From positions 62,001-126,000 of IMG/VR virus record IMGVR_UViG_3300050343_000191: a stretch of 64,000 nucleotides of DNA. One strand, written 5' to 3'. The position numbers and the translations under genes are program-made. Shown one piece after another: positions 3,278 to 40,833 of the stretch; the stretch's first letter is position 1; every line of letters begins with the position of its first letter. Under the pieces are notes generated by a model. The model saw only the letters and a program-made list of their open reading frames with translations. It was not told where the DNA came from and made no database searches.

Positions 3278-4219
3278 TTACTTCTTCTTCTTTTTCTTCT
3301 TATGTGATCCGCAAGAAGATTCGATAATGCTTTGGATGAACTCTTCATCCAATTGATTCATTACATAATCTGCTTCTTTAATATCAGAAGCATGTCCTTC
3401 TTTAATCAGATAGTCTGCAATCACCTCGTAGTGAGCATAGATTGAAGGTACAGGATTTGCTCTAATATTCTTATATGCTTTAAGACTTACCTGATATCCA
3501 GGACTGTTCTTATAAAGATCCTTTGGTTGATTTTGCAATCTCCACCATCCAGCAGATTTGTTATTTGAAGATGAACTCTTTGCTTTTGCTGCTTTTGCTG
3601 CTTCTGCTGCTTTTGCATCTGCTGCTGCTTTTTCTGCTTCTCTTTGCTCTCTAGATCTTTTTTCTTCCGGCGTTTCCACCTTCTCTTCTGGATCTGATGT
3701 ATCTACCTTTGAATCAGTACTAGGATCTGATATGCCAGGAATTAACTTGTTATCTAAAGCGACTTTTGTACCAAGAGTAACAAGACCTGCAGCACCCGCA
3801 ACTGCAGCACCTTGTTTGATCTTTGTTTTTTGAGCAGATGGTATCTTATCTTTAAGTTTTCTAATCAGCGATGGTGGTTTAGTAGGATCAACTTTGGCAC
3901 CTGGTCTTGTTGCACCACTGGTAATAGGTCTTCCGCCTTTAGTTGTTGTGGGAGGTTTGCGGAGACGTACCTTTCCACCTCTACCAAAAAGTCTCATCAA
4001 GAATCCCGACATACCTCCTTTTTCACATATAAGTAAAAAGTCGGGATTACCTGTATCAATTGTCTCACTTAGAGTTATCGACTCGCAGATTTCTAATACT
4101 TTAGATTCATCATTTAAATTCCAAAATTCCATGATCTGATCTACATCATAACCTTCCTCAAGCATAGAGTAAGATATATGCAAAAATGTCTTTTGCTCTT
4201 CAGAAAGATTGTAATGCAT
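3278..4219 (-). CDS. Late hypothetical protein with two acidic EG[YH] domains and a poly-Lys tail
   Basis: 'MLEEGYDVDQI', 'YLIKEGHASDIKEADYVM', ends KKKKKKK; TAAATA at 4243-4248. Confidence 0.75.
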   Translation of the reverse strand: MHYNLSEEQKTFLHISYSMLEEGYDVDQIMEFWNLNDESKVLEICESITLSETIDTGNPDFLLICEKGGMSGFLMRLFGRGGKVRLRKPPTTTKGGRPITSGATRPGAKVDPTKPPSLIRKLKDKIPSAQKTKIKQGAAVAGAAGLVTLGTKVALDNKLIPGISDPSTDSKVDTSDPEEKVETPEEKRSREQREAEKAAADAKAAEAAKAAKAKSSSSNNKSAGWWRLQNQPKDLYKNSPGYQVSLKAYKNIRANPVPSIYAHYEVIADYLIKEGHASDIKEADYVMNQLDEEFIQSIIESSCGSHKKKKKKK

Positions 4220-4248
4220 CTCTAGTTACTATCCTATATTGTTATTTA

Positions 4249-6016
4249 TTAGTTGCCCGCTCTAGATCTCTGAGCGGCAACATTTGCTTTTCTGGTTGCC
4301 TCATCATTTCTATTGTAATATCCCTTCAAATAATCAGAGACATATGGAACTCCTGCACCAGCAGTTCTTCTTCCAATTCTCTCAAGAGGATTAGATGAAG
4401 TATATGCAAGTGAAGAAGGATCGTTACCATGCTTGTATACTGCTTTACCATCCTTAAAAGCACGATATCCAACTCGTTCTTTATTATTAGCATCACGAAC
4501 AATTGCCTTATTTCCACTTCGTGAAGTAGCAGACATAGCAGGAGTTCCAGTTTGTACCTGACGATTTGCTTTTGCCATCCACTTTTTATCAGAAGCACTT
4601 GCTCCCATTACATAACCAGAAGCAGCATCACCAAGAGTAGAACCAGCAAGTGGTCCAACAAACGCTGATGCTCTTTTTCCAATAACACCACGTAATAATG
4701 CAGTGGTGGCAATAGATCCTAATGTAGAACCTGTGCCAGAAGCAAGTGCTGCATTTGTTTGTCTTTCAGCAGTTTGTCCTCGTGCTTTTTCTCTTTCCGC
4801 TGCACCATATGCGTTAAAAGCACCATAGAAAGCACCCGAACCTGCACCACTACTTGCCTTTTTGACTGTTGGTGGTTTATATGTACTACTACCCTTCCTT
4901 ATACTAGTAGATCTTCTTCCTAAATCTGGAGGAGTGTTTGCTATTTTTTGTCTTGCTTGTTGTGGTGTTACCGGGTTTTTTTTAGTTGAGGGGGGTTTAG
5001 GACCACTATCAATTCTACTAGAAGGACCAGCAGCACCACTTACTCTTCTTCTTGTTGGATTTGCAGATACTGATACTGGTTTATTGCCTGGTTTGTATGA
5101 GAACGATCCGCTGCTAGTCTGACCAAATTTCAAAGTCTTACCGGCAGTACCCACAGTACTTGAAGTGGATGGTAATTTTGGTGGAGTTTTTGTCTTTGTA
5201 GTACCAGAAATTGTGAAAGATGGTTTTGGTGCCGGTAGGGATTGCTTCACTTTAGCAATAGTTTTAACTGGAATAGGTTTGATTTTTGGAAGTTTTGATC
5301 CAGAAGTCGCAGTAGAACTAGATGCTCCGGTACCCATATTTTTGAGAATTTCCTTTGCATTCAGATCACCAACCTTTACTTTACTATACTGCCTTGCACT
5401 TGGCGCTCTTCCACCAACACCCTGTGGTAGATTAGTCGTTGCAGGAAGTGATCTGTACGTTGGTGCCCCTGTAAGAGGATTTGCACCAGTAGGCGTACCA
5501 AAAGACTGTCTGAATCTTGCTGCCCTCTTAGATACCTCAGACTGTTTAACTGCGGTTGTTTTAGGTGTTGGTGCTGGTTTTGTTCTAGTCCCAATACCAG
5601 TAGATTTTACATCTGACGGTCTTGTCTGACGATATCTTTGACCTCTTCCAGGTTTTGCTGTTTCTCCACCAATCTTAATGTCATCAGCATCAGCACCTTT
5701 ACCACCACCAATAATATTAGAAGCTGCTTTTCTTGGCGTAGGATCTGCTCCTGCACGAGATCTAATATCATCAGCAACTTTTACCTGCTGTTTAATATCT
5801 GGTTTACCGGCATATCGTGCTGCGGAATCTTTGCTTGGATTAAATCCCTGACCACTATTTTTAGGTGATCCTTTCTTTGGGTTTACAGTAGTATTGGCAG
5901 GATCTTGCACCTTTGAACGGGAAGTCTCTATATCAACATTACCCCCCCCCCCCCCCCCCAACACTACTCTTAGTGCCAAAATTTGATTTTTTTCTTCCTT
6001 CGTTTAGTGATGCCAT
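4249..6016 (-). CDS. Large basic low-complexity protein interrupted at a G18 tract
   Basis: ATG at 6016 gives MASLNEGRKKSNFGTKSSV-G6-stop; one G fewer joins it to the 576-aa frame. Confidence 0.7.
5942..5959. repeat. C18 homopolymer (G18 on the coding strand)
   Basis: Read directly from the sequence. Confidence 0.95.
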
Positions 6017-6044
6017 TTCAGATACTTTGTAGTTTTTGCTTAAA

Positions 6045-6401
6045 TTATTTTCTAAGGATTTCAGGTTTTGCTTTTTTTTCTTTCTCTTTTCTTTCATCAT
6101 CACGTTTTTTTAATCTCATCTGATCAACGCCTATGGCACCAAGTTTAAAAGCAGCAGTGTATGGATTTGTCGCTGGCAGTGCTTGTGCAGCAGCATTATA
6201 CATACCAAATTCATCCCCATCTCTTACAGATTCAATTCCTCTCTTGAGACCTATCCCCGCTGATACTAAATTAGCTCCTTGTGTCCAGTAACCCGCTTTA
6301 GATCCACCCCTCAAAATATTAAATGCAGCACCCCAAGGATTTTCAACAATCAACTTCGATTGATCTGATTCAATAACAAATTGTTTATATGTTTTCATCA
6401 C
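6045..6401 (-). CDS. Late protein with a T4 internal-protein-like capsid-targeting leader
   Basis: N-terminus MKTYKQFVIE resembles the T4 IPIII leader MKTYQEFIAE; TATAAATA at 6418-6425. Confidence 0.7.
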   Translation of the reverse strand: MMKTYKQFVIESDQSKLIVENPWGAAFNILRGGSKAGYWTQGANLVSAGIGLKRGIESVRDGDEFGMYNAAAQALPATNPYTAAFKLGAIGVDQMRLKKRDDERKEKEKKAKPEILRK

Positions 6402-6426
6402 TCACACTGTTTTTAGATATTTATAA

Positions 6427-7458
6427 TCACTTTGCGCTTATAGATCCTCCACTTGTACCAATCTCTTTTCTATAATTGATAGTATTTTTTGTTGCTTGTT
6501 GACGCTCTTTTGCAAGTGCTGCAGCGTCTCTTTCTCTTTGTCCACCAACACCAGTTGCTCTAGAAAGTCTAGAGAAAAGATTTTGATTGCCTCTTTGTGC
6601 CATACTTGCTCTTGCAAGATAAACAGGTTTACCGTTTTTATAAGCAAGATCACCAACTCTACCACCAGAGAGAATTTTAGTGCTAGGAAGTTTTGCAGTT
6701 TTACCTCCACTAGTAATAGTATTATTTTTTTTATCTACATCCATTTTACCACCAGTACCGACGATGCCAACACCCTGTCTAGATCCGTAGGCACCTTGCT
6801 GACCTGCTTTTTGTCTTGCTTTGACTGCAGCAACGTCTTTAGGGGTTCCAACTTTCTTTTCACCAGCAACAGAACCCCATTCAACTGGCACTACTTCACC
6901 TTTATATTTTGCTGCTCCAATTCTAAAAGGTTTATCCTTTTCAGATCTGTCTGTCTTATTAGCGTAAATTTTTTCGGCCTTAGGATCATTATAAGTATAT
7001 CCCTTTTTATTTCTCCCTGTTGCTAAGTACTGATCTAATTTAGATTCTCCACCAGTAACATCAATTCTTTTACTAATAGTATAGTCCCCATATTGCCTTC
7101 TACCCCTCGGTGCTGCGGAACTGGATCCGGCACCACCTAGAGCAATAGAAGTGATTGGATTTGCATATAATGCGGCAGTATTTATTGCAGAGTCTTTTGC
7201 AGTTCTCGCATTTTGTTGAGTTTTTGGATCTTTTATTTTACTGATTCCTACTTCTGCTGCAGTATCTAAAGCAACATAAGTACCAAGTCTTGCTGCACCC
7301 CCACCCACTCTTTTCAAAAGAGATGGTCTTGTAGTAGTTGTTGCTGCTGATGGTGGTGGGGATGTTGGTAACTTGGGAGCAACTCTTGGTGGTTGTGCTT
7401 GAGGTTTCATCCTCATTGAATTAGATTGACGCATTGCATTCAATTGATTCCTTCTAGA
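6427..7458 (-). CDS. Basic low-complexity protein, paralogous to 4249-6016 at its C-terminus; 5' end joined in frame to nrdB
   Basis: Non-NrdB part of ORF 6427-7767; 'RVGDLAYKNGKPVY'. Confidence 0.65.
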   Translation of the reverse strand, partial: SRRNQLNAMRQSNSMRMKPQAQPPRVAPKLPTSPPPSAATTTTRPSLLKRVGGGAARLGTYVALDTAAEVGISKIKDPKTQQNARTAKDSAINTAALYANPITSIALGGAGSSSAAPRGRRQYGDYTISKRIDVTGGESKLDQYLATGRNKKGYTYNDPKAEKIYANKTDRSEKDKPFRIGAAKYKGEVVPVEWGSVAGEKKVGTPKDVAAVKARQKAGQQGAYGSRQGVGIVGTGGKMDVDKKNNTITSGGKTAKLPSTKILSGGRVGDLAYKNGKPVYLARASMAQRGNQNLFSRLSRATGVGGQRERDAAALAKERQQATKNTINYRKEIGTSGGSISAK

Positions 7459-8636
7459 GAATCCTGAGAAGGTATCTTTTTTGACATCTTGTTTGATTCC
7501 TCCGACGATGTAAGACTCAACCTCAGTTTCCTGAGGAGCGACCTGAAGACCCTTCGACGAAATCCAATGTTCCGTCCAGGGGAGTGGGTTATTCTTTGCG
7601 GGTATGTCATAGATTGGTTTAAGTCCAATTGCTTTCATTCTACGATTGGCAATCCATTCAACATACTGCTGAAGCAGTTTATCATTCAGACCAATCATAG
7701 ATCCATCTTTGAACAGATACTCTGCCCAAAGTTTTTCTTGATTAACACAATTTTCAAAATGCGCCAATCAACCATTGCTCTTCTTCTTTGAAGATTTTGC
7801 CATCTCAGGATCATCACCTTCTCTCCACTTCTTCAGAATATTCTGAGTAATGGCAAGATGCTGATTCTCATCTCTGGCAATCAGTGAGATGATTTTTGCA
7901 CTTCCTTCCATAAGTTTGAGTTCGCCAAAAGCAAAACTGCAAGCAAATGATACGTAAAAGCGAATACCTTCAAGAATATTAACGTTTGCAACTGCTCTGA
8001 AGAGTTTGCGCTTGAGTTCATATCTTGAAATTTGTGCATAAGGAACTCCTTCTAATGCGTGTTGCCAATCATTAGTACTATCATAATGATGTGCTGCATT
8101 AATAAAGTCATTATATGCCTGAGTAACACTCATAGCACGTTCAACAATGCGATCATCATTCAGAATGTGATCAAACACATCTGAAGGGTCTGGATAGATG
8201 TTCTTGATGATATGAGTATATGAACGACTATGGATCATCTCCATGAACCCCCAGACCTCCATACATGCTTCTAATTCAGGTAAGAGAGCAGTAAGGGATA
8301 AATGCCATACCAGGACCACGACCCTGAACCGAATCCAGCATGATCTGATACTTCAAGATTAGAAGTAAAGATATGCTTTTGCTCTGGACGTAATGTCTGA
8401 TAATCAGCACGATCTTTCTGGAGAGAAACTTCCTCTGGTCTCCAGAAATATCCCTAATTGTTGCGTTGTGAGTTTATCAAAAATTGGATACTTGTAAGAA
8501 TCATATCTCTGAATACCCAATGGTTTACCAAAAAACATTGGTTGTTTTTTAGTATCAACTACCTCTGAGTTAAAAACAGTCATGGATTCGACCATTGGTT
8601 TTCTTCTTTGTTTGTCTTAAATTTTACAAGACTCAC
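7459..8636 (-). CDS. nrdB: Ribonucleotide reductase class Ia beta subunit (frameshifted; lacks its own stop)
   Basis: EMIHSRSY, NILEGIRFY, RDENQH, VAPQETEVESY motifs across several frames. Confidence 0.95.
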
Positions 8637-10920
8637 AGTCTTCCTCCTCGGCGTTTTCTAATTGAGAAATTAAACTATCAAGAGACTCCTTAGTAGATTC
8701 TCTACTTCATCAGTCTTGATTATCGTATGTATTTTGATAATAAGAAGTCTTCCAACCGTATTTGTATGTAGTTAAAAGATCTTGTGCCATTACTGAAACT
8801 GGAACTTCAGAATCAGGATAGTTCTCTGGATTATAACTCCAATTGCCAGAAATTGCTTGGTCAAAGAACTTCTGCATTATAGCAACAATATTAATATACC
8901 CACGATTGGACCAGGCATATCCCAAAGTAACGTATAATTATTTTTAAGGTTGCATATTGCGGAACAATTTGCTTAAGAGGTCCTTTTTTGGCTTTTCTTA
9001 ATGGACAAGTATCCTCTAGGTGGTTCAATTCCATTTGTTGCGTTTGACACAACGGAACTGCTCTCCGAAGGCATCTGTGCGGACAATGTTGAGTTCCTAA
9101 CTCCGTATTCCAAGTACCCGTTGTCTAAGATCTCCCAATCATACTGAAGCTCATTTGCAACTATTTCATCTACATCATGTTTATATGTATCAATTGGAAG
9201 AATTCCATTACCATACTTGGTTCGATGACTATATTCACATGCACCTTTTTCTTTTGCAAGATTGACAGTTGCAGAAATTAAATAGTATTGGAATGCCTCA
9301 GTTAAATCATGAACTGCAGTTTCCCAGGCTCTGCATCATTGTAATTGAACCCATGCTTCGCAAGATAGTGTGCTAAACCGATATAACCGATTCCAAGTGA
9401 ACGACGTGCCTTTGTGGCAATTTCTGCTGCTCTGATGGGGTATCCTGAAAATCAATGAGTTCATCAAGACTCCTAACAGCAAGATCGCAAAGAACTTGAA
9501 GATCTTCAAGATCCCTAATTTTACCAATATTAATAGCACTAAGGATGCAGAGAGCAATTTCCCGTTTTCATCATCAATATGTTGTAAAGGTTTAGTAGGA
9601 AGAGTAATCTCTTGACACAATTGCTCATCTCAACTTTATCCATAAAGGATGAGTGAGAATTACAATGGTCAATGTTCATGATGTAAAGACGACCAGTCTC
9701 TGCTCGTTCTTTCAAGAAGGTCTAAGAAAGAGATCCTGTGCCCCGATAGTCTTTCTTGGAGTAAACTCATCTGATTCATAGCGTACATAGAGATCGTCAA
9801 ATGTATCAGTACCAAAAGCATCATAGAGACCTGGTACGTCATGCGGTGAGAAGAAGCTAATCTCTCCATTCGTAATGAAACGTTCGTAGAAAAGTTTTGA
9901 AATTTGGATTGAGTAGTCAAGTTTCGTACCCGATTGTCTTCTGTGCCTTTGTTGTTCTTAAGAACAATAATATCTTCTATTTCTTGGTGCCAGATAGGAA
10001 AGTGAACTGTAGCTGAACCACCTCTGATCCCGTTTTGAGTGCAACATCGTACAGTTGATTCAAACTTTTTAAGGAAGGGGACCACGCCTGTGTGTTGTAC
10101 CTCTCCGCCTCTGATTTTAGCGTTGATGCCACGGATTCGACCTGCGTTGATGCCGATTCCTGCACGTTGTGCAACATATTTACCAATAGCCATGTCACTG
10201 CTAAAGATACTATCGAGGGTGTCATCAACATCAACAAGAACACAGCTCGCATACTGTCGCAAGGGGTTCTGACCCCTGCCATGATTGGCGTGGGGATGTT
10301 GAGTTTGTGTCTGCTGATTGCATCATAGTATTTTTTTACGTAATCTAGACGGGTTTCTTTTGGATACTTTGAAAAAATAGTGGCAGCAATCAACAGATAC
10401 ATGAACTGCGGTGTCTCGTATTGAGCACCCGTACTACGATCCTGCACTAGGTATTTATCCACAACCTGACGCAAACCAGCATAGGTAAACAGATAGTCAC
10501 GATCATGATCAATAAATGATTCAAGTTTATCAAACTCTTCATCAGAGTATAAAGATCAAGAATTTCTGCATCATAGACTCCTTTCTCCACACAGAGTTTA
10601 GTGTGTTCCTACACTTTGGTGTCTCGTGTCTACGACCGTTGATTTGCTTACCTGAGAGCAAACAGAAGCAAGCGAGCGGCAACAAACTGATAGTTGGGAT
10701 GATCCAGATCGATCAAGTCGCTTGCAGAGCGAATCAAAATCTCCTGAATTTCTCCTGTAGTAATCCCATCATAAAATTGAATGCCAGATTGCATCTCAAC
10801 CTGAGAGGCAGAAACACCTGCCAGGTCCTTACATGCTTCCTCCACCATTACGTGGAGTTTATTCAGATCAAGAGGTTCAGTATTTCCATTTCTCTTAATT
10901 ACCTTTGTCCCGTTGCTCAT
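8617..10920 (-). CDS. nrdA: Ribonucleotide reductase class Ia alpha subunit (frameshifted)
   Basis: ATP cone VIKRNG, PTPIMAG, CTQNGIRGG, CQEITLPT, GWKTSYY, C-terminal CESC. Confidence 0.95.
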
Positions 10921-11887
10921 ACTTTTTTCCAAGTGTTAAATTTAATTTTTGCTTCTAATCCAGCATATGTATTCAATTTTATCATAGACATAACATCATG
11001 TCCAGCAAGAACCATATCGTTAATGTCTTTCTCTACGATGTTGTTTGGCCAGATTACTACCTGGAGTCTCCTCTATCGATGAGTTTGGCAATTCGGTTGA
11101 CGATTTCTCTGTTACGTGGTTCATTATCAAGAACCCAAATATGATCGCTCCAATCAAACGACCGAATATCAACATCGGACCCACACATAGCAACAGCGTT
11201 TTCCACGAACGTGGAGTCGAAGGGTCCTTCAACGATGTAAATTGGTTGTTTTTCAATCGACATTATCAAGTCCGTATAGTTTCGGAGAATGGTCATTCAA
11301 CATCACAGTGATATATTTAAAGAGTTAGGAAGTGCTCTACCCTGAAATCCAATAAGATTTGTCTCTCATCATACATTGGTATAATGATACGTGGTTCATC
11401 CCTATGATGTGGAGTCAAACGTTTGTTTCTACTATTTGTCCACTCCATAAAACTTGTCAGCAAAATAAAACTTATCGGGATTAAGTTTTCTTTTTGTAAG
11501 ATATTTGTTCGCAACTGGATCTTGAAGATGCTTTGGTAAACCCAACTTCTTTTTGAATACTGGTTTCTTGAAGTTCAAACAGGTTCTTCGAACACAAAGT
11601 TTTTACCAGTATGACCTTCCTTAAACTTCTCAATAGTATATTGTTTATGAAGAGTAGTATCAATCTTCTTAATAAAATTATTCAACGACAAACTAGCACC
11701 ACAATTATGGCACTTAAAGTTAGTGTTATTCTTCATAACATACATATACCCACGTGCACTTGTTCTTGTTCTTCTGCGAGTCTCCACAGATAGGACAACG
11801 GAAGTTGTAAAGGTCTGGTTTGACCTTCTTGAATTTTTGTAGGCGTGACGAAACTAATCCAATATACTTGGAATCAATCAGATCCAT
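10917..11887 (-). CDS. gp61: DNA primase (frameshifted)
   Basis: Zn motifs FRCPICGDS..KCHNCG; TOPRIM YIVEGPFDS..DNEPRN. Confidence 0.92.
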
Positions 11888-11897
11888 TACAATAGGA

Positions 11898-12287
11898 CTA
11901 CTTCTGTTGTTCTATTATAACTGGTGTTTGGTTAGGAGTCAAGAAATTTCCCATCAATTTTTGACCTGGTATGCTAACCAAGAATGATATTACAGTCAGG
12001 GCACCAGCAATGGTCCACATCTTCTTTTCCATAAGACGAAGACGTTCATCAATTAATCTAATATCTCTCTCACAACCTTTCTTTATTTCCTCTGCTTTAC
12101 GATTTACTTCGCGATGTACACTATCTACCTTCTCAAAGAGTACAGCATCAATTCTATCTTGCTTATCTAACTTCTCATTATGGACTGCTAGAAGTTGACC
12201 CATCTTTACGGAGTTATCCTGCAAAGATTCAACTACTCTTTCCAATCTTTCTAAAATGGCAGCATTTACACCAGCAGCATCATCCAT
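11898..12287 (-). CDS. Coiled-coil protein with a C-terminal TM segment
   Basis: 'LLAVHNEKLD..RLRLMEKKMWTIAGAL'. Confidence 0.7.
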   Translation of the reverse strand: MDDAAGVNAAILERLERVVESLQDNSVKMGQLLAVHNEKLDKQDRIDAVLFEKVDSVHREVNRKAEEIKKGCERDIRLIDERLRLMEKKMWTIAGALTVISFLVSIPGQKLMGNFLTPNQTPVIIEQQK

Positions 12288-12661
12288 TATAACTTCCAGT
12301 TCTTACGGACACCTTTGAAGTAAATATATTTTTTCTTTCCTTTTTTGGGGTCCACAGGAGGATCATCTCCTGCTTGAACTGTTCCTGCAATCTTACCGTC
12401 ACCAACATTATTAGTTGGACCACTAACGGCACCAGCACCCATATCTTCATCCAGTTTAGTTTGTGGATCATTTTTAAATCTTCTTTCATCCCCTTTACCA
12501 GAAGGGTCGAGAAGTATTTGACGCATCGTTCTTACTTTTGGTTGTGAAGTTAAAACATTAGTTCCACCACCACCGCCACCCATTCTAAGATCGGCAGGCA
12601 ATTTTCTTCCTACTTTGAGGTTTTGCTCTCTTATAATATTAATGATCTTATCAATATCCAT
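12287..12661 (-). CDS. Hypothetical protein
   Basis: Likely start MDIDKIINIIRE; 'LDEDMGAGAVSGPTNNVG'. Confidence 0.65.
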   Translation of the reverse strand: MDIDKIINIIREQNLKVGRKLPADLRMGGGGGGTNVLTSQPKVRTMRQILLDPSGKGDERRFKNDPQTKLDEDMGAGAVSGPTNNVGDGKIAGTVQAGDDPPVDPKKGKKKYIYFKGVRKNWKL

Positions 12662-13032: not shown

Positions 13033-13041
13033 ACCATATTA

Positions 13042-13339: not shown

Positions 13340-13387
13340 TCTTTTACCTTTGAATCTTGTATAAAGATATTTATAAAAAGTAATGGA

Positions 13388-13594: not shown

Positions 13595-13633
13595 TGTTTT
13601 ATCACATATTTACATTATATAGCACGCTAATAG

Positions 13634-29227: not shown

Positions 29228-29246
29228 AGTTTTTTATTCGGTTACT

Positions 29247-31258: not shown

Positions 31259-31260
31259 AA

Positions 31261-31733: not shown

Positions 31734-31915
31734 TAGAATCCCTTACCGTTCTTCTTTGATTTAGGTAACAAATTTTTTAGTTCTTTTTCCGAGTAATTTT
31801 GACACGTTTCGAGCATCTTATCTAAAGCATATTGGAATTGAGAACCTTTACTCATTTTACTAAGTAGATGATGTGCTACATCATATCTTAGTTCTTCAAG
31901 TTCGTTCTTGTTCAC
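31733..31915 (-). CDS. Small hypothetical protein
   Basis: Coupled 60-aa ORF ending KGF. Confidence 0.55.
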   Translation of the reverse strand: MNKNELEELRYDVAHHLLSKMSKGSQFQYALDKMLETCQNYSEKELKNLLPKSKKNGKGF

Positions 31916-32853
31916 CTGAATTCACACTCAACCATAATTTCAGTTAAACATGCAAGCATATTTATTTCTTGGTCGGCAACGAATGCTGCCTGATACTGAT
32001 ACTTAGCAATAATGAGCACAGCAGCAGGAACAGTAGCGTTTGTAAGGGATGAATAGCAAGCATCGTAAATACGACGCATAAGTACAGTAGTATCATTATC
32101 CAAATTAGAAACGATCCACTTACGAACTTCCGCAAAGTTCTTCTCCTTAAGATTCTTGACAAGTTCATTTACAGCAACATCAGAGAAAGTAGCAAGAATG
32201 CCAGAATCAATCTTCCCACTAACAGAATATCGCTGAATCTCATTGAGTACACGACGCCAGTCTGGAAAGTGCTTATTAACAAGTTCTACCAGGACCTTGT
32301 TATCATATTCAACACCTTCTGTATCCAAGATTTCTTGGAGACGTTTGAAGAATTGTGCGGCAATGGATTGTCGATCTTTTCCTTTAATTCCAAACTCAAT
32401 GACTGCACATCGGGAGTGAAGGGGTTCAAGGATTTTATTTTTATAGTTGCAGGTGAAGATGAATCTGCAGTTACCAGCAAACTCCTCAATAAACGCCCGT
32501 AGGAGGAGTTGTACATCGTTGGATGTGTTATCTGCTTCATCAATGATGATGACTTTGTGTTTTGCAGTTGAAGAAAGCGAGACGGTCGAAGCGAAATTCT
32601 TCGCATTGTTTCTGACCGTATCCAGAAAGCGTCCCTCATCGGATCCATTGATGACATAACAGTCAACTCCAAGTTCATTACAGAGTGCCTTTGCTACTGT
32701 GGTCTTACCGATACCTGGTGGACCAGAAAGAAGCATATTAGGAATCTCTCCTTTATCTAGGAAAGATTGAAATGTCTTCTTGGTTTGTTCAGGGAGGATA
32801 CACTCTTCAATAGTCTTCGGGCGATATTTTTCAACCCAAATAAAGTCGCTCAT
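31912..32853 (-). CDS. gp44: Clamp loader large subunit
   Basis: WVEKYRP, GPPGIGKTT, IIDEAD, SRC. Confidence 0.97.
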   Translation of the reverse strand: MSDFIWVEKYRPKTIEECILPEQTKKTFQSFLDKGEIPNMLLSGPPGIGKTTVAKALCNELGVDCYVINGSDEGRFLDTVRNNAKNFASTVSLSSTAKHKVIIIDEADNTSNDVQLLLRAFIEEFAGNCRFIFTCNYKNKILEPLHSRCAVIEFGIKGKDRQSIAAQFFKRLQEILDTEGVEYDNKVLVELVNKHFPDWRRVLNEIQRYSVSGKIDSGILATFSDVAVNELVKNLKEKNFAEVRKWIVSNLDNDTTVLMRRIYDACYSSLTNATVPAAVLIIAKYQYQAAFVADQEINMLACLTEIMVECEFR

Positions 32854-32864
32854 AATAATAAAGG

Positions 32865-33392
32865 TTATACCCAATCAGGTTTACGATCTGGAATGCGAAG
32901 GTAATTATCGCATACCCATGGTTTAGATGCAATATACATCTTGTAAGCAGTGAAAATATCAATGCTTGTATCATACTTGAACTCATCAGGTCCAGCAAAG
33001 ACAAAGGGTGTTGTATCCTTTCCACTGCGACCTTGAGGATCTGCGGTAGGAAGTATCTCCTTTGCTGCTAGAAGGGTCTTGTGGCAGGTGTGGACCTTAC
33101 CATAGCGAGCAGTGTACTCTTCACACATAGCAAGTCCATGAGCAAGCAACCACTGCCAATTGGTTACAAATTCATTCGCCCACTTGGTGCAAGGATGATT
33201 GCGAAATGCTCCCTTCTCAGTTGCATATGGAGTTCCATCTGCCTTAGGAAGATTACCAAATCCGTGACCCCATTTATCAGAACATACGATTGCAAGCATC
33301 TGACAGGTCTCTAAGGGCATCTTGACAATGTGCTTGTCAGGGAGAACCGTAGCAGACTTGTATGGACTCGGATCAGTTACAAAGATGTTCAT
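32865..33392 (-). CDS. Pyrimidine-dimer glycosylase (DenV-like) family protein
   Basis: MNIF..DKHIVKMPLETCQML..NHPCTKW..EYTARYGK. Confidence 0.75.
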   Translation of the reverse strand: MNIFVTDPSPYKSATVLPDKHIVKMPLETCQMLAIVCSDKWGHGFGNLPKADGTPYATEKGAFRNHPCTKWANEFVTNWQWLLAHGLAMCEEYTARYGKVHTCHKTLLAAKEILPTADPQGRSGKDTTPFVFAGPDEFKYDTSIDIFTAYKMYIASKPWVCDNYLRIPDRKPDWV

Positions 33393-33597
33393 ATCAAAAG
33401 TTTACTAACGCTAATTGAAAGTAGGAACGTTAACATTATAACAAGGTCCCATGCCCTAGTTCTAATAAAGTATGGGATTGTAATCAAATCTGCAACAAAG
33501 TGTATTAGGACCCCCCAAAAAGAACTGACGTGAAGAATGACAAAGTAGGCAACAATAACTCCAATACTGCCCATAATTCTCATCCTAACTAGCGTAT
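33389..33597 (-). CDS. Small membrane protein
   Basis: Hydrophobic 'GSIGVIVAYFVILH..IPYF..WDLVIML'. Confidence 0.55.
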
Positions 33598-34261
33598 CAT
33601 CCAAAAGTCGAATCGGGTTCAAGAGCAATGTAATAGGTAAGATTGTACTTAGTATTCGTAAACTTAGAGAGAAGTTTAGAAGAAACAACTACATCATAGG
33701 CACCAGGAATAATTTTGATATTCTCTACTTTGAAGTTGAATGAGAACTCTTTATCAGTTTCACCAACAACAATTGCATATTCATTAGAAGTATCATTCTT
33801 CTTATCACGAACAACCAGTTTGATAACTCCTGCTTCACCAATAGCAGAAAAATCTGGGAGTTGATAAACTTGTGCTGCTTTGATTAGTTTTTCCAAAGAA
33901 GAACTGTCAAGTTCAAAGCAGACATCCTGAGTAGGAAGATTGATTTCTTTCTCTGGAGGAGAAACAATAACCGCAGGATCAGCATAAAAATACTTGACCC
34001 GACGCTTACCTTCTTTAATACTCAGATAAGAATCTTCTCTAAAATCAAGATCAGGATCTTGATGAAGACTTAAACCATTAAGAACTGGTTCAAATCATAG
34101 ATGGCAAAATCGCGAGGGAATTCTTCTTTAATGTCTGCTTCTGCCAAAATATTTTTAGCAACAGAAATAGTACGGAGTTTGTTACCCTCTTTCACCAGAA
34201 TAGAATTGTTAATTCCAGCAAAGTTCTTAAGAACAGTTAGAGTGTTGTCGGACAGTTTCAT
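33597..34261 (-). CDS. gp45: Sliding clamp (frameshifted)
   Basis: MKLSDNTL..LKNFAGIN..FAIYDLNQFL..YYIALE. Confidence 0.93.
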
Positions 34262-34281
34262 AGTATTGAGATTCAATTTCA

Positions 34282-34830
34282 TCACTGAGGATAGGTTTCA
34301 CGGTTTGCATTTTTGTCATTGAAATGCATTAGAAGTACAGCATAATGCAGAATCTTCATAATGTCACGACGGGCAGTGCCCTTCTTATCATATCGTGACG
34401 CATACTTGAGGATGTTGCTGCGACAGAATGCCTCACCATCACCACAAGCTTCGATAAGATCCAGAGTTTGAATCTTATCATCGCCAGCAGAATAGTGCTG
34501 GTCATATGTTCTAGTGATGTAATCTTTCAGTTCTTTAATAATTACATCTTCACTATACTTCTGTCTATTATTAGATTCGGATTTTTTATCCATAGTCAAG
34601 TCAAAGTTAATGTGGTCTTCGCCACCAAAGGTCATAGGTACAGGTTGTGCTGCAAAGGGACCAGGATCACCAAAATCAATTACGCCGTCATAGTAAGAAC
34701 TACCGAATGTGATTGTATCGTTAGACATAGCACCTGGAAGATGAGATCCTAGATTTAGCATACCTTCATAGTTGTCTTCACCAAGAGATTCGTTCATAGT
34801 ATCGTAAAGTAAACTCCAAGCATTAATCAT
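34282..34830 (-). CDS. DUF3310-like (T7 gp1.7 nucleotide kinase-like) protein
   Basis: 'HY..IQTLDLI..FCRSNILKY..RYDKKG..DIMK'. Confidence 0.65.
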   Translation of the reverse strand: MINAWSLLYDTMNESLGEDNYEGMLNLGSHLPGAMSNDTITFGSSYYDGVIDFGDPGPFAAQPVPMTFGGEDHINFDLTMDKKSESNNRQKYSEDVIIKELKDYITRTYDQHYSAGDDKIQTLDLIEACGDGEAFCRSNILKYASRYDKKGTARRDIMKILHYAVLLMHFNDKNANRETYPQ

Positions 34831-34834
34831 TATA

Positions 34835-35932
34835 TCAGGAGATGATGCCTTTGTCTAGTTGCTCTTGAGAAGTTTCTTCAGATGTCTGACTTGGCATCAC
34901 AAAGTCAGCATCAACTTTATCATACAATTCCAAGAATGCTTGCTTGGTTTCATCATCGAAACGATTTACACAAACTTGAATTGCCTTTGCCTTATCATTG
35001 AAGATACTGTATGCCTTCACAATATGAACCAGACGACGGGTGCTGATGATTTCTTCAATACCACCATCATAGAAGGTTTTGCGGATGATGTCTGCCCAAT
35101 CACAAGTCGCTTGCAGAAGTTCTCATCAGCACAGATTTTATTAAGAATCTTAATCTCAGTAACAGCAGTGGGATACTCCTGCTCAAAGGTTACAGGGAAT
35201 CGTTCAAGGAATGCTTCATTGAGCACGTTAGTTCCAATGAATCGTCCGTCGTCTGAACCTTTACCCTTAGTGTTTGCGGTTGCGATGACGTTGAAACCTG
35301 CAGTGGGGTGTACAAACTTCGTCCAATTTTTTTGAGGAAAACTCCTTTTCCTTCAAGGATAGATTGGAGACAGAGAATTTTGTTAGAAGCAAGGTCGATC
35401 TCGTCAAGGAGCAAGATAGCTCCTCGTTGGAGTGCTTCAATGACTGGGCCATTGTGCCAGACGGTTCCACCATTAACAAGGCGGAAACCGCCAATAAGAT
35501 CATCTTCATCAGTTTCGATTGTAATGTTTACACGGATAAGTTCCCTACCAAGTTGAGCACACGCTTGCTCAACAGAGAACGTTTTACCATTACCAGAAAG
35601 ACCGGTAATAAACGTAGGATAAAATAGACGGGACTCAATAATTTTTTTAATATCGCCAAAATTACCAAACTTGACGAAGGTATCATCTTTAGTAGGAATA
35701 AGGTTTTGCTCGAAACAGGCATAGCAGGAGGTGCCTGATAAGTTTGCTCAAGTTTTTCTTGAACGGTCAAGTTCCATTTACCACGACTAACTTTATAATC
35801 AGACAATTTATTAGATACAGTCTGATAGTTAGATCCATTCATTGCACACCAAGCACGAATATCAGCACCAGTTACAGACTCTCCATAAAGTTCCTGTAAA
35901 GAAGTGAGAATGTAATCAGTAGAGAGGGACAT
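34835..35932 (-). CDS. cobS: CobS-like AAA+ ATPase (frameshifted)
   Basis: GLSGNGKT, LLDEIDL, NEAFLERF. Confidence 0.88.
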
Positions 35933-35961
35933 CTGTTGCCTTGTTTGTTTCAACTGTAGTA

Positions 35962-36018
35962 ATTATACTAAAAAAGGGGGCACTTTGGAGTACCCCCTGT
36001 GACAGTTATGTAAGTGGA
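35962..36018 (-). promoter_or_regulatory. Motif + terminator hairpin + TATAAT unit upstream of cobS
   Basis: CCActtacatAACTGTC-a-cagggggtac..gtgccccc-T6-agTATAAT. Confidence 0.55.
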
Positions 36019-36021
36019 CTA

Positions 36022-36270
36022 CTAGTCTTCTGCATCTTTGATTTCTTCAATCAAGGATTCTTTACTATGCCTTCTGTCTAATTCAATACCAAGTGTTCTA
36101 CCATAATCTTCCAATTCTTTCTTACTCATTTCTTCAAGAGGACTTGCTTCAGTAAGAACTTCCTCTTCAGGAGTAAACAGAACTTCTTCTACAATGGGTT
36201 CAGGAGCAGGTGCTGCCTCAACCTTAGGTGCGGATGGTCCGCCTTTAAGTAAATCTCCGAACTTGCTCAT
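36022..36270 (-). CDS. Small acidic late protein with a Rho-N/SAP-like C-terminus
   Basis: 'LEEMSKKELEDYGRTLGIELDRR'; TAAATA at 36293-36298. Confidence 0.7.
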   Translation of the reverse strand: MSKFGDLLKGGPSAPKVEAAPAPEPIVEEVLFTPEEEVLTEASPLEEMSKKELEDYGRTLGIELDRRHSKESLIEEIKDAED

Positions 36271-36330
36271 TAGTCTAACAGTAATTTTGAATTATTTATT
36301 AAAAAAGGAGGTCCTAAAACCTCCAAATAA

Positions 36331-37787
36331 TTATTCAGGAAGTCCCTTTACTCCTGCTCTCTTATCAGCATAATATCTCTTTAATGCTTCTTTAGATCCT
36401 GGATTATTTGGATTGTACCAAGAAGGTCTCCCCATCTCCATATTTCTCTGTCTGACTTGAGTAGATGCTTCACGAGCATTGCGATCACTAACAGCACGAG
36501 GATCTAAATTATTCAATCTAGTTTTTTCTCTCGTAGCAGCGCGAGTTGCATCCTTTGCCTTCGATGCTGCAGTGCTCTGATTAAGTCTATTGACAGCATC
36601 TGTTGCTTGACCTTGGCGAAGTCTCAATGCCCCAATATCACCAGCTGGCATTTGCGTTGGTGCCTTGTTAATTAACTTTTTAATAAAAGGAATTTTGCTT
36701 GCATACTTAGTAGCTTGCTTTCTAATAAAACCCACCAATTCATTCAATTGTTCTTCATTCAAATTTGCCATCATATACATTGTATCCTCTTCACTATATC
36801 CTTCTTCAATAAATTCACCTTTGACAATATCAAAAAGGTCTACACTTGAAAGCTTAAGGGATTGCGTAATTTTTTTAGTTGCAGCAGGAGTTCTCGTTTG
36901 AGTTACACTAATACTAGTGTCTGGATTAACTTTCGTTTTTACAGTATCACCTGTTGAAACTGTACCAGACTTAACTGTATTGTTTACAGAAGACTGTGTA
37001 TTTGCAGGAATCTTTGCAGGAATCCCACTCTTAACAGCAGCAACTTCTTTTTGAATCTTATTTTTTTGAGCAAGTCGATCTTGTTGAGCACGAAGAGCAC
37101 TACCGGTAGGTGCCTGCTTATTCAAAACAGATGGTCTGTTAGCAGATTTAATAGAAGCATTAACTGATGCCTGTCTTTGACCCTGCTGCACAGCCAGCTT
37201 TAATCTGCACCTTCAGCGCCCTTACCTGCCGCTCTTGCTGCTTGTGCCGCTCTCAATTCTGCAGACGTAGGTGCTCTCCTCTCAAACTTTGTTCCACCAG
37301 GAGTGGTTCCAATTGCTGGTTTATTAGTTGCCTTAAATGCCTTATCACCGAATGCCTTTGCATCACCGCCAGATTTTCTTAATCTATCATATTCCTTATT
37401 AATTTCTGCTTTGGATGAATATGTCTTACCACCAATTGTATATGTTTGGGTTGATTTTGGGGTAGATGGTGAAGGTTTTGATTGAACACGCTGGTCATCA
37501 GTTCTTGCGGCGTTATCACGCTTAATCTGCGCTTCAACCTCATTTCTACGATCAGAACCCTTAGGAGAAATACCGACTGATCCTACAGGAACAGTATTGG
37601 CAGCAGCCTTTCTCTGTTGCAGTCTTTTTGCAATGACACCTTCTGGATTTCCAGATTTTTGAACAAGTTTACTAAATTCCTCATCACTCATTGATGTGTA
37701 ATCAGGAACTTTTATTTGTTCTTCAATATAAACTTTAGCGTAAGCCTCTTTGAGAGACTTCGCTCCTTTACCAGTTAGTCTCTCCAT
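36331..37787 (-). CDS. Basic protein with an internal acidic EEGY domain (two ORFs joined across frameshift(s) near 37200)
   Basis: 'SLKEAYAKVY', 'DLFDIVKGEFIEEGYSEEDTMYMMANL'. Confidence 0.7.
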
Positions 37788-37790
37788 GAA

Positions 37791-37949
37791 TCAACCTTCT
37801 TGAATTTGTTCAAACCACTGTTCACTCATTCCACTAATAATGGAATCTGCAGAATCTACGTCTGTGGCGTAACCTTCCTCAATGAGGTGTGTTACAACCT
37901 TTTCATAGATCTCTTTAGTCTCTTTTAATTTCTTAGGGGAAGGTTTCAT
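37791..37949 (-). CDS. 52-aa stand-alone EEGY-domain protein (below the ORF-track cutoff)
   Basis: MKPSPKKLKETKEIYEKVVTHLIEEGYATDVDSADSIISGMSEQWFEQIQEG; TAAATA at 37974-37979. Confidence 0.75.
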   Translation of the reverse strand: MKPSPKKLKETKEIYEKVVTHLIEEGYATDVDSADSIISGMSEQWFEQIQEG

Positions 37950-37980
37950 CTCTAGACACTTTTTCTATAAACCTATTTAT

Positions 37981-40117
37981 TCAAGCGATAAGTTCAATAA
38001 ATTCACCTAAAACCCTTTTGTTCATTTTCTTACTTTTCAAACTTTTAACAAAAGCAGATTTGATCTTTGCTTTAGTAGCACCCTCATCAACATCAAAGTC
38101 AGAATCACTAGAAAGTACGGTACCAGAAAGTCCAAAATAAGTGTGATATCCAGATTTATGAATAGCAAATGCCTTTTCCTTTTTCCAAATCTTTTGAATC
38201 CTATCAAAGTTTTTACCACCCCAACCAGTATATCGGCGGATGAAACTAGTAGCATCACGAGATTGAAGGACACGAATACCAATAAAGTTTACGTCAGTAA
38301 ACTTATCACGAAGATTACGAAGAAGAATATCAGTAAACTCATACCACTCACAATCTAGAGAATATGTATTTCCAGTTTTACGATCTCGAAGAAAAGCATT
38401 GCTATGAATAGTACCAGTTCCAATAAATGGTTCGTGCTCCCAGTGACGTTGAATTTCACGATGAAGTTTTAGAGGAGGTGCTTCGCCGTCAGTCATCACA
38501 ACGCACTGAACTTTCTGCAGTTTATTCTCCTTTTTAAACTGAGGTAGAATCTGATGTAGAGCAATCATTGATTCATTAAGAGGAGTTCCAGAAAGATTCA
38601 ATCCACTAGGAATGGGAAGCATACCATAACGACAGAATGAGGATGCCAAACGAAAGAAATTTTTCATTTGTTTTTCCATTTCTTTCAAATTAGTTTTGCT
38701 AGTGAAAATATTCATCATTGAAAACCACTCAGCAATATAGAGAAGACCCTCACGCTTCTCATAAGGGAGATCACGAATCTGCGGATGACCACTATTGTTA
38801 TAAGTAACGAGAGGATAGTCGTTAGTGAAGGCATATACTTCAAACGGAATAGAAACCTTCTTACAAAACCACATCAGATTATAAAGTTGCTTGAGAGTAT
38901 CCATCATTACATCACACATAGAACCACTCCAGTCAAGAATAAAAATAAGACCATGACTCTTGCCATCAGCAAGTGTAGTTACTTTTTTGAATATATCTTC
39001 ATTATAATTGTAAGTATGCAACTTGGAGCAGTCAAGAACACCAGTGCGAGCAGTAGTAGCACGGGCATAAGAATCTGCTGCCTTTTTACATTCAAACTCT
39101 TTTACCAGATAGTTGACTTCTTTCTGAGCAGATTTTTTAAACTTCAAAAATTCTCTATCAACAAAACCAAACGCCTGTTCTTCAGTAACCTCATTTTCCT
39201 CCATTAATTCATCCCACTCATTAAAACGAGAGTGAATTTCAGAATTAGGAACAATAATTTTTTTCAAGTTAACTTTAGGAACTTCAACATATACATTCTC
39301 ATTACCATCTATTGGATGCAAGTTCTTTAAGAGCTTCCTCCAGACTATTCATAGTAGAAACTTCAGGATCTTCTAAACTCTCACCATCATCAGAAGATTT
39401 GCATTATCTTCCAGATTCCATATCAAAGTCATCATATTCCTGCTGAGGTTCTTCATTAGTTCCTTGTTCAATACCAGATTCTTGACTTTGATTAATCTCA
39501 GGTTGATCTTCTTCACCTTCCTTGACCACCTTGCATCTGTAGGTCATCAGTCTTAGTCATCATCTCTTGCTGTTTCTTACAAAAGTCATAAAGTTCTTTA
39601 GAAACTTGAAGAACATCATCGAAAGTCTCAGTATCAGAAATCTTTCAATTCATCAACTGATTTTCATCTTCAGTAAAGGTCAATATCTTACAAAACTACC
39701 AATCTTAAACTGAAGATTTGCTTTATCAGCAAGATTCATTGTATTCAGATTCTCATTCTCAATCTGAAAGAAATCATTCTCAGCCAATTCTTGATATCCA
39801 CGATAGAAGGTCTTAGATATACCTCCATATCGACGCTTCATTAGTTTTTCAATTCGCACATCTTCAACTACATTCACAAACTGTGGAGGAATAATTTCTT
39901 TCAACCAGTTGCGATCAGGAGTGTAAAGTGCGTGTCCAACTTCGTGTCCGACAAGCATATCATAAACTTGACTACTTGCCTTTTCCCACATTGGCAGACG
40001 TCAAACACGAGTATGAACATTGAAACAAGCAGTTTCACAATACTTATGCTCAACTACCAAATCTTCGGTTGCCAGAAGTTTAGCAAGTTGAGATTTGATT
40101 TCGTGTGAGACTGCCAT
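37981..40117 (-). CDS. CobT-like metallopeptidase/vWA protein (frameshifted)
   Basis: HEVGH motif, NVVEDVRIE, LDWSGSM, GTPL, TDGE. Confidence 0.85.
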
Positions 40118-40138
40118 TGCTTGGTTGCGTATGGATCT

Positions 40139-40193
40139 ATTATACAAAAAAAGGAGGTCCGAAGACCTCCCAGTAGACAGTTTATAAACTGGT
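40139..40193 (-). promoter_or_regulatory. Motif + UUCG terminator + TATAAT unit upstream of the peptidase
   Basis: CCAgtttataAACTGTC..GGAGGTC-TTCG-GACCTCC-T7-gTATAAT. Confidence 0.6.
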
Positions 40194-40194
40194 T

Positions 40195-40833
40195 CTATTT
40201 GGATTGTTTGCCTTCAACAATACTCTCTTTCCACCCTTCACTCATATTTGCCATAATGGCGACCGCAGCCTCCTCAGTTTCAGCAAAACCTTCATCAATT
40301 AAATGACCTTTGATGATATCAAAGAGGTCTGTATCTTCATTGTTTACAGTTCCAGCAGCGACACCCTTTTCCTGTTTTGTTTGAGGTCTGCGCTTACCCA
40401 TTCTTGCTGCTTCTGCTTCAGGGGATTGGTCAGCAGGTCCAAGAACTTTTTTACCTACATCGACCGCAGCTTGACCAATTTTTTTAACAGCACCCATCAT
40501 ACCACCCATTTCACTGATGGTATCACCTTCGTGCTCAACGTGCTCTGGATGCTCAACCATAGTAATAACTTCCATATCTTCTACGGATACGTTCTCTACA
40601 ATACCGTGCTCAAACTGAACATCGTAGTGTGAAACGAAACCGTTCTCATCAGGAACAGCGTGCTGACCGAAGATGGTTTCACCTTCACCCCACTGCTCAG
40701 AGCAGACTTTCTTGGCACAATTGTGATCGCCCTTTTCAGACTTACTTACACAATCACCCTTTTTCTTCTTTCCATATCCCTCATAAACGGAAGCATATGC
40801 CTCCATAAGAGATCTTACTTCTTTTGCTTCCAT
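40195..40833 (-). CDS. Late modular protein with an EAY leader, a His/Cys domain and a C-terminal EG[FY] domain
   Basis: 'SLMEAYASVY', 'HNCAKKV..HYDVQFEHG', 'DLFDIIKGHLIDEGFAETEEAA'; TAAATA at 40862-40867. Confidence 0.75.
   Translation of the reverse strand: MEAKEVRSLMEAYASVYEGYGKKKKGDCVSKSEKGDHNCAKKVCSEQWGEGETIFGQHAVPDENGFVSHYDVQFEHGIVENVSVEDMEVITMVEHPEHVEHEGDTISEMGGMMGAVKKIGQAAVDVGKKVLGPADQSPEAEAARMGKRRPQTKQEKGVAAGTVNNEDTDLFDIIKGHLIDEGFAETEEAAVAIMANMSEGWKESIVEGKQSK

Follow-up and report, generated by a model that had tools for sequence, protein, structure and literature searches.

Module copies and carrier genes in the window

The window, i.e. the whole 64,000-nt stretch analyzed here (positions 62,001–126,000 of the IMG/VR record IMGVR_UViG_3300050343_000191), derives from the 231 kb genome of a marine T4-like cyanomyovirus. 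Its minus strand encodes basic, disordered proteins of low complexity that carry copies of an acidic module of approximately 42 residues, referred to below as the LIEEGY domain. E-values in the list are those obtained with the outside-only profile described in the next section.

40195–40833, minus strand: 212-aa carrier ORF, composed of a leader (residues 1–11), a Cys/His-rich region, a disordered linker and the module
40213–40329, minus strand: module copy 1, residues 169–207 of the 212-aa ORF, long "DEGFAET...NMSEGW...IVE" subtype (E-value 6.8e-20)
37791–37949, minus strand: stand-alone 52-aa gene, with the leader MKPSPKKLKE (37920–37949) followed by the module
37797–37907, minus strand: module copy 2, in the 52-aa gene (E-value 6.5e-16)
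36331–37787, minus strand: carrier gene of ~480–508 aa, assembled as a 195-aa ORF (37200–37787) and a 286-aa ORF (36331–37191)
36730–36840, minus strand: module copy 3, in the ORF 36331–37191, short-loop "EGYSE..NLNEEQL" subtype (E-value 2.7e-10)
4082–4192, minus strand: N-terminal domain of the 313-aa protein (residues 10–46), with the motif "MLEEGYDV", taken for a fifth copy in the first-pass annotation
3320–3430, minus strand: module copy 4, residues 264–300 of the 313-aa ORF (3278–4219), "EGHAS" subtype (E-value 3.2e-11)
3281–3319, minus strand: C-terminal tail with S-S-C-G-S-H and a lysine run, immediately after module copy 4

The assembly contains local indel errors, and the head genes of the window, including gp21, gp22 and gp23, are disrupted by assembly errors; a homolog of gp21 is present. 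In a related genome (L010) a single 508-aa gene spans both the 195-aa and the 286-aa ORF, matching them in two different frames, so we regard the two as one gene cut by a frame change; comparison of metagenome contigs with the assembly reveals two gaps inside 37000–37900. Judged from these alignments, what appears as a "286-aa ORF" is the final portion of a ~500-aa gene. The 52-aa gene, which had been proposed as a free-standing copy of the module, proves to be real and conserved: independent metagenome contigs match it without any difference, it has homologs in 56 clusters (73–96% identity), and it is annotated in two phages, as PSSM2_140 in P-SSM2 and SSCSM2R_130 in S-SCSM2R. Metatranscriptome contigs map to small fragments of the locus only, and the 52-aa gene is not among these.

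The 212-aa protein has 447 homologs, the majority of them full length, whose alignment reveals an invariant Cys/His-rich region at approximately residues 26–95. Copy 3 groups with the copies of P0190 and P0202. Copy 4 is nearly invariant in 29 orthologs of the 313-aa protein, most of which also retain the tail that follows it. The 212-aa family has a comparable tail, E-G-S-C-M-G...poly-K, and the tail motif is found in 97 of the 390 proteins fetched, followed in 95 of these by a lysine run.

Membership and conservation of the module family

The first-pass annotation reported five copies of the domain. All five stretches lie on the minus strand at the places described, and four of them are significant members of one family, while the fifth is not. 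A profile made of the five window copies recovered only itself and leave-one-out comparisons were weak for both stretches of the 313-aa ORF; it was replaced by a profile of 45 columns that draws on 73 outside sequences and excludes those of the window. The search with it covered the complete six-frame set of 3685 ORFs from the 231 kb genome. This outside-only profile finds exactly four copies, and every other ORF has an E-value of at least 0.7. The weak leave-one-out result could suggest that the similarity is due to chance or to acidic low-complexity sequence, but the outside-only E-values (7e-20 to 3e-10), the 1352 outside clusters that match at E-values up to 1e-10 and the position-specific character of the conservation make such an explanation negligible; it is ruled out for the four copies and applies to the fifth stretch only.

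The fifth stretch scores 0.0 against the outside-only profile (E-value 140), and in the profile-profile comparison (hhalign) it reaches a probability of 6% over 8 columns; what it shares with the module is the eight-residue "MLEEGYDV". Within the 313-aa protein family no other region is as well conserved, and the alignments show invariant residues in it. By these comparisons it is a conserved domain without detectable membership of the module family. A short variant of the module, "W-V-N-S-L-x-E-E-G-Y-D-L-S", found in 22 outside proteins, was also considered for this stretch and rejected (variant profile 7 bits, E-value 0.74).

The family comprises 3430 clusters at 50% identity and includes thousands of proteins from uncultured cyanophages. 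Its members are 52–600 aa long and carry one to three copies of the module at any position, which bears out the N-terminal, internal, C-terminal or solitary placement described from the window. The expected I/L-x-E ending is likewise recovered: over 232 instances the hydrophobic position is I in 88% and L in 6%, and the module closes with E in 73% and with D in 9%. Some copies terminate the protein with Q or G. The most conserved positions of the module are G (99%), E (96%), L (95%) and A (93%). The copies in the window are 40–80% identical to copies in other phages, compared with 32–40% to each other.

No Pfam model exists for the family and none matches any ORF of the window. Among 120 family proteins, matches were found to PHROG 3708 (106 proteins), 22522 (78) and 27516 (21), all annotated without a function; in the window the 286-aa ORF matches 3708 and the 212-aa ORF both 3708 and 22522. 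These PHROGs are whole-protein clusters and do not delimit the 42-residue module or its repeats. A feature search of the ESM Atlas returned unnamed clusters only, and in the fold search of BFVD the sole good matches were uncharacterized cyanomyovirus proteins. We found no published description of the module in the literature on cyanophages and LisH or on cyanophage capsid targeting sequences. We conclude that this acidic three-helix unit is a real, previously undescribed protein module.

Wherever the genomic context could be read, the family belongs to cyanomyoviruses, in which two conserved loci account for most of its occurrences; T4-like cyanophages are so far its only known source. An IMG/VR locus search with an 8-row alignment placed 67 of 80 loci in two conserved neighborhoods, with the gene orders gp46-[X]-peptidase-[X]-cobS-gp45 and nrdB-...-basic protein-[X]-tail fibre genes. 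The description of the domain as a mobile module thus needs to be divided: among orthologs of the 212-aa protein, one and the same position is occupied by one or the other of two module subtypes, as expected of a shared and shuffled domain, but the confinement to two loci speaks against free mobility in the genome. Most carrier genes lie amid replication and recombination genes, and those of S-CRM01 adjoin psbA or lie amid small genes with no assigned function.

Predicted fold and self-pairing

AlphaFold models the module confidently as three helices (residues 3–16, 22–31 and 34–44; pLDDT 84), and in the model of the 212-aa protein the module is the only confidently folded part (pLDDT 81–84). 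On these models, the module is predicted to fold autonomously as three helices. A homodimer of the module is also predicted, with a score of 0.52 against 0.02 for the best control, full (100%) agreement of contacts among three runs and a partner pLDDT of at least 82; in the calibration, 20 of 30 solved homodimers and 1 of 23 monomers attained the mark that it passes, and the custom alignment used for the module lies outside that calibration. The predicted interface (residues 17–20, 24–28 and 30–36) coincides with nearly invariant columns of the family, and the contact surface is formed by the E-G-Y-A loop, helix 2 and the N-M-S-E-E-W turn. According to these models the module probably pairs with itself.

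As regards predictions of this kind, small helical peptides may be placed together without real binding. The conserved surface could instead serve a different partner.

N-terminal leader and promoter-like motif

Many carriers begin with a leader of fixed length, M-x7-L-x-E-A-Y, which is separate from the LIEEGY domain. The commonest arrangement is L9/E11, represented by L9-M10-E11 in the 212-aa ORF, while the 52-aa protein has L8-K9-E10 in a leader that is nearly invariant among its homologs.

40801–40833, minus strand: leader of the 212-aa ORF (leader profile E-value 3e-8)
37746–37787, minus strand: 14-residue leader variant of the 195-aa ORF, with L12-K13-E14
37974–37980, minus strand: ATAAATA, 24 nt before the 52-aa ORF; the heptamer resembles a late promoter of the T4 type
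36293–36299: ATAAATA, 22 nt before the 82-aa ORF
4243–4249: ATAAATA, 23 nt before the 313-aa ORF

In T4, capsid targeting follows the rule of a 10-residue leader with L/I at residue 8 and E at residue 10, and the gp21 protease cleaves after L/I-x-E, whereby core and internal proteins are processed (PMC9026906). The leaders described above, of approximately 10 residues and ending in L-x-E, resemble this targeting sequence, the likeness being one of pattern, and by this analogy a T4-like signal is better matched by the N-terminal leader than by the LIEEGY domain. In the 231 kb genome the leader profile matches two ORFs only and detects no further cargo, so the leader is not a general signal in this genome. 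The heptamer ATAAATA occurs 24 times in the whole window against 20 expected; with no enrichment across the window, we treat the three sites listed above as a lead only.

Possible function of the module

The first-pass annotation regarded the module either as a scaffold-binding or packaging tag or as an acidic pro-domain that neutralizes the basic payload until cleavage. Spelled out further, the tag would bind the prohead core or scaffold, or the acidic piece would shield the basic regions until the prohead protease gp21 cuts after the terminal I/L-x-E. Several observations agree with this: I-x-E is retained as the ending (I/L in 94%, E in 73%), T4 gp21 has just such a specificity and the window encodes a gp21 homolog, basic linkers and poly-K tails are interspersed with the acidic module, the 52-aa gene directly follows the major capsid gene in S-SCSM2R and lies near gp3/uvsY in P-SSM2, and ATAAATA stands 22–24 nt ahead of three ORFs. 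Yet the terminal glutamate is replaced or absent in about a quarter of the copies, L/I-x-E is frequent in any acidic amphipathic helix, the majority of carriers are found in the replication/recombination or psbA surroundings described above, and the separate leader accounts better for a T4-like signal. The text on the S-SCSM2R virion proteome reports 23 proteins, only one of them of unassigned function and not named there, and offers no virion evidence for the module; no other proteome of a module-bearing phage was found, the S-SRM01 paper containing none. On balance we consider a prohead tag or pro-piece unlikely, while keeping it as a candidate.

Two readings start from resemblances to known domains. 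Descent from the eukaryote-type LIS1-homology dimerization motif (LisH, PF08513), of which the module would be a viral branch, is suggested by Pfam matches in 18 of 120 family proteins at E-values up to 0.01 (best 3.5e-6), by the common pattern of a hydrophobic helix 1, G-Y/F and a second helix in a short helical unit, and by the predicted homodimer, LisH being a dimerization device at varied positions in multidomain proteins. The matches, though, span only profile positions 2–19 of 27, the two inspected score 17.6 and 12.8 bits compared with a gathering score of 21.6, no ORF or module copy of the window matches LisH even at an E-value of 10, and neither the PDB profile search nor the fold matches listed for the PDB include a structure with LisH. 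The module differs, moreover, in being strongly acidic, in its longer loop and in a third conserved helix (N-M-S-E-E-W...I-x-E), and its carriers are disordered phage proteins rather than eukaryotic regulators; true homology to LisH is in our view improbable. The best cellular fold analog is a three-helix element of the RNA polymerase beta' subunit (approximately residues 370–420 in E. coli numbering), which we take to be the "dock" and which the module might mimic in order to bind a sigma factor or another transcription factor. This element, with a similar G-Y/L-A...A...W pattern, is the top match in Foldseek (E-value about 2) and VIA-align (Z 5.7) searches of the PDB, among Swiss-Prot AlphaFold models (28 of 30 rows) and in the PDB sequence-profile search (Clostridioides difficile beta' 370–396, E-value 0.088). 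None of these matches is significant (E-values 0.09–4, and Z under the level that the tool considers meaningful for helical folds), and the Foldseek and VIA-align searches of the PDB and the Foldseek search of Swiss-Prot models gave weak generic three-helix matches only. Three-helix bundles are common, with ANTAR domains scoring almost equally; the beta' element is part of a 1400-residue enzyme and not a free module, and there is no contextual link to transcription genes, so that mimicry of beta' appears very improbable.

The explanation that we prefer, and hold to be about evenly balanced between right and wrong, is that the module is an acidic autonomous self-association unit on multivalent disordered proteins of T4-like cyanophages. 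It would serve protein-protein association by pairing with itself or with sister copies; one to three modules would be strung on fast-evolving basic disordered proteins, and their pairing would link these multivalent carriers to each other. The free 52-aa copy may cap or bridge such links, and its earlier interpretation as a competitor would fit a self-pairing module. The analysis itself shows family membership, the independent predicted fold, the predicted homodimer, conserved synteny and the shuffling of subtypes; pairing inside the cell and the role of the resulting assemblies are inferred. The prohead core or packaged DNA would be a likely setting, as many carriers and the 52-aa protein start with a leader of fixed length ending in L-x-E, like the T4 capsid-targeting sequence.

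The T4 internal proteins (IPI, IPII, IPIII and Alt) offer a parallel: they too are diverse proteins with a common short N-terminal leader of fixed length ending in L/I-x-E, and the gp21 protease is present in both phage groups. Some T4 internal proteins are basic, as are the module carriers. They differ in lacking a LIEEGY-like domain, and in the source genome the leader is found on two ORFs only. A more speculative proposal, which we regard as rather doubtful, is that the carriers are the long-missing internal head proteins of marine cyanomyoviruses. The leader would direct them to the prohead core, where the acidic self-pairing modules would neutralize the basic DNA-binding segments; gp21 would then cut at the leader and at the I-x-E end of the module, and the basic polypeptides so released would settle on the packaged DNA or be ejected into the host.

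Few viruses in the ocean are as abundant as the T4-like cyanophages, yet a function is known for only a minority of their genes. With the module, thousands of protein clusters that Pfam does not cover can be grouped into one family, and in combination with its probable self-pairing, with the leader and with the poly-lysine tail it gives genes annotated as "hypothetical, low-complexity" a testable architecture. If the carriers are indeed internal to the head or ejected, they would provide a handle on cyanophage DNA condensation or host takeover, and possibly a natural tag with which cargo could be directed into the capsids of cyanophages.

Neighboring basic ORFs

Next to two of the carriers lie further ORFs for basic proteins:

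40849–41406, minus strand: basic ORF of 185 aa that corresponds to the C-terminal portion of a ~349-aa gene, with its start inside error-ridden sequence
4249–5979, minus strand: 576-aa module-less neighbor, very basic and of low complexity (pI 10.9, net charge +66)

Metagenome contigs are identical to the assembly over 40150–41404, and at position 41426 four bases are absent in all four metagenomes. The 576-aa ORF is syntenic with PSSM2_211.

Copies of the module in the window

A profile built only from the five copies that the first-pass annotation had listed is circular, and in leave-one-out testing it was weak on both copies of the 313-aa ORF. Outside relatives were gathered for this reason, and 73 of their module sequences, with none from the window, went into a new profile. 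As an HMM test of that list, this profile recovered exactly four copies of the ~42-residue module, and no further ones, among the 3685 six-frame ORFs of the genome.

Module copies recovered by the outside-only profile
40213-40329, minus strand, module copy in the 212-aa ORF, E 6.8e-20
37797-37907, minus strand, module copy in the 52-aa ORF, E 6.5e-16
3320-3430, minus strand, module copy in the 313-aa ORF, E 3.2e-11
36730-36840, minus strand, module copy in the 286-aa ORF (split gene with the 195-aa ORF), E 2.7e-10

All five listed stretches are present where they had been placed, but the fifth (4082-4192) scores zero with this profile. Against a profile made from the short "EEGYD" variant of 22 outside proteins it reaches only 7 bits, and profile-profile comparison aligned 8 columns with a probability of 6%. 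The N-terminal region containing it is more conserved than any other part of the 313-aa protein (29 orthologues); it is a real domain with a shared short motif, but not a demonstrable copy of the module. The window copies are 40-80% identical to copies from other phages, as against 32-40% to their neighbours in the window.

Genome setting and assembly quality

The window corresponds to bases 62001-126000 of a single contig of 231,085 bases from a T4-like cyanomyovirus, and codes for terminase, tail sheath, nrdB, a "cytidyltransferase" and a cobS-linked "peptidase"; the minus strand carries nearly all genes of the region of interest. The closest annotated relatives are the Synechococcus and Prochlorococcus phages S-SKS1, S-SRM01, P-SSM2 and S-SCSM2R. 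Between ~41400 and 53400 the core genes gp46, gp47, gp55, uvsW, uvsY, gp3, gp23, gp22, gp21 and gp20 are all fragmented into pieces of 70-130 aa with shifting frame, at about one indel per 47 bases relative to S-SKS1, a pattern that suggests unpolished or chimeric assembly rather than biology. Four independent metagenomes match the window perfectly at 37.6-39.3 kb and 40.15-41.4 kb, and at 39.3-40.0 kb and from 41426 on they agree with each other against it, with a dozen small indels (about 12 in the "peptidase" region 39308-40003). The module copies themselves are untouched by assembly errors.

The "peptidase" (phrog_459, HExxH; 37981-40117) is split into two ORFs and is intact in a close relative (709 aa), where other genes are also whole (349 aa vs 185 aa in the window; 508 aa vs 195 + 286 aa). 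The nrdB gene (6427-8319) is split at 7767/7768 into ORFs of 183 and 446 aa, and in the latter the nrdB match is confined to the first 121 residues, the other ~325 being unexplained.

Size, conservation and distribution of the family

A search of 1.84 billion proteins with the module profile gave 3430 cluster representatives with E-values of 0.001 or below, of which 1352 reach 1e-10 or below. In the best 150 of the 3430, one copy is present in 70 proteins, two in 74 and three in 6; the proteins range in length from 52 to 600 residues, and copies may lie anywhere along them, which agrees with the proposed N-terminal, internal, C-terminal and solitary placement (a copy ends within 5 residues of the C-terminus in 25 of 236 cases and starts within 5 of the N-terminus in 10 of 236). 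Conserved columns are L (95%), E (96%), G (99%), Y (85%), A (83%) and A (93%), followed by I (79%), M (84%), S (84%), W (78%), I (88%) and, at the last position, E (73%); the I/L-x-E ending described earlier is a family trait.

We found no Pfam family for the module; most members are covered by PHROGs 3708, 22522 and 27516, all of unknown function, and the family appears to be undescribed. Cyanomyoviruses are the only isolated phages that have it, and its metagenome contexts are T4-like cyanophage. Two neighbourhoods, both also seen in the window, account for 67 of 80 IMG/VR loci:

gp46-[X]-peptidase-[X]-cobS-DUF3310-gp45
nrdB-...-basic protein-[X]-tail fibre genes (also in P-SSM2)

Rarer contexts are beside gp43/gp41 or beside a baseplate gene. 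Among orthologues of the 212-aa protein, the module at this one site belongs to either of two subtypes. The module had been called mobile; given the two prevailing neighbourhoods, what occurs is shuffling within resident proteins, not free hopping.

A second short variant, W-V-N-S-L-x-E-E-G-Y-D-L-S-x-Y-T-W-E-E-M-Y-E-A-Y, missed by the main profile, closely follows the N-terminal leader of 22 of the 146 representatives (e.g. outside proteins P0068, P0129 and P0183, residues ~25-70). In S-SKS1, the nearest annotated relative, hardly any genes are annotated from the gp45 region to gp46 (record 89725-93556), and the profile detected no copy in that interval; this locus may differ or be poorly annotated.

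The stand-alone gene

That the module also exists as a gene of its own is borne out by 56 homologue clusters of the 52-aa ORF (73-96% identity, with a length of 52 residues in nearly all), by annotated genes in P-SSM2, where uvsY precedes it, and in S-SCSM2R, where the major capsid gene immediately precedes it, and by exact matches in independent metagenome contigs. The protein opens with ten almost invariant residues, MKPSPKKLKE. A single codon separates its stop codon from the in-frame ATG of the following gene (37787-37793), a layout found in this phage, two metagenome relatives and S-SCSM2R, where the downstream gene is gp3 (outside loci L010, 6159-6163; L011, 497-501; L002, 6159-6163). 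The arrangement suggests translational coupling, or possibly read-through.

Carrier proteins

The carriers are basic and of low complexity (pI 9-11), the acidic 212-aa protein being the exception. The N-terminal half of the latter is an invariant Cys/His-rich region shared with "cytidyltransferase" PHROGs (phrog_764, 11470, 22379); at 40549-40758 (~residues 26-95), C28, H37, C39, C44, H58, H69 and H76 are nearly invariant. This region may be metal-dependent, since AlphaFold leaves it unfolded. The putative cytidylyltransferase (T4-GC190) is reported to be a virion protein in S-SM1 (Sullivan et al., PMC3037559).

A leader ending in L-x-E is present in 61 of 146 representatives, with L-x-E-A-Y beginning at residue 9 (42 cases) or 12 (13 cases); in this genome it occurs on the 212-aa and 195-aa ORFs and on no other. 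The module is followed by a tail E-[G/S]-S-C-G...poly-K in many members of the 313-aa and 212-aa families, and this sequence (E-[G/S]-S-C-G-x, then a lysine run; 3281-3319 in the window) recurs in the alignments of both, which are otherwise unrelated. Possible roles of the tail are nucleic-acid binding, membrane binding or that of a cleaved propeptide.

Fold and possible function

Modelled alone, as had been proposed, the module forms three helices (AlphaFold, mean pLDDT 84), and it is the only confident part of the whole 212-aa protein. The predicted homodimer passed our test, scoring 0.52 against 0.02 for the best of three controls; it was run on an alignment of our own, so the calibration counts (20 of 30 solved homodimers reached the mark, as did 1 of 23 monomers) hold only roughly. 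All contacts (100%) agree between runs, partner pLDDT is at least 82, and the predicted interface (residues 17-20, 24-28, 30-36) coincides with the most conserved columns, which supports, without showing, that the module binds. The best-supported mechanism, to which we give an even chance, is that the module would be a self-association unit carried on multivalent disordered proteins.

The packaging tag or pro-domain of the first-pass annotation is a pattern-based and rather unlikely alternative. In T4, IPIII begins with a capsid-targeting sequence of ten residues, of which 8 and 10 determine processing, and gp21 cleaves after L/I-x-E (PMC9026906); the carrier leader resembles it in pattern only. 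The leader, the I-x-E ending, the proximity of the 52-aa gene to the capsid gene in other phages and the promoter-like ATAAATA (22-24 nt before the starts of the 52-aa, 82-aa and 313-aa ORFs and 36 nt before gp18, with no overall enrichment) speak indirectly for such a role, but most carrier genes lie among replication genes. Fold searches against PDB and Swiss-Prot models returned nothing significant. The top analogue in every library was a three-helix element of RNA polymerase beta', with ANTAR domains ranking next, and a beta' segment also came first in the PDB sequence-profile search, with E 0.088; mimicry of this element is a weak lead and very improbable. Descent from LisH, a weak lead and somewhat less remote, would account for weak Pfam LisH matches in 18 of 120 relatives, but the window copies gave none.

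Expression and a neighbouring ORF

RNA libraries contain only small pieces of the locus. The 82-aa acidic ORF (36022-36270), also preceded by ATAAATA, is 99% identical in the close relative L010; over its last 45 residues it matches the phrog_3281 ("endonuclease VII") profile, in the C-terminal part of that profile, and this looks like an HeH / Rho-N type motif.
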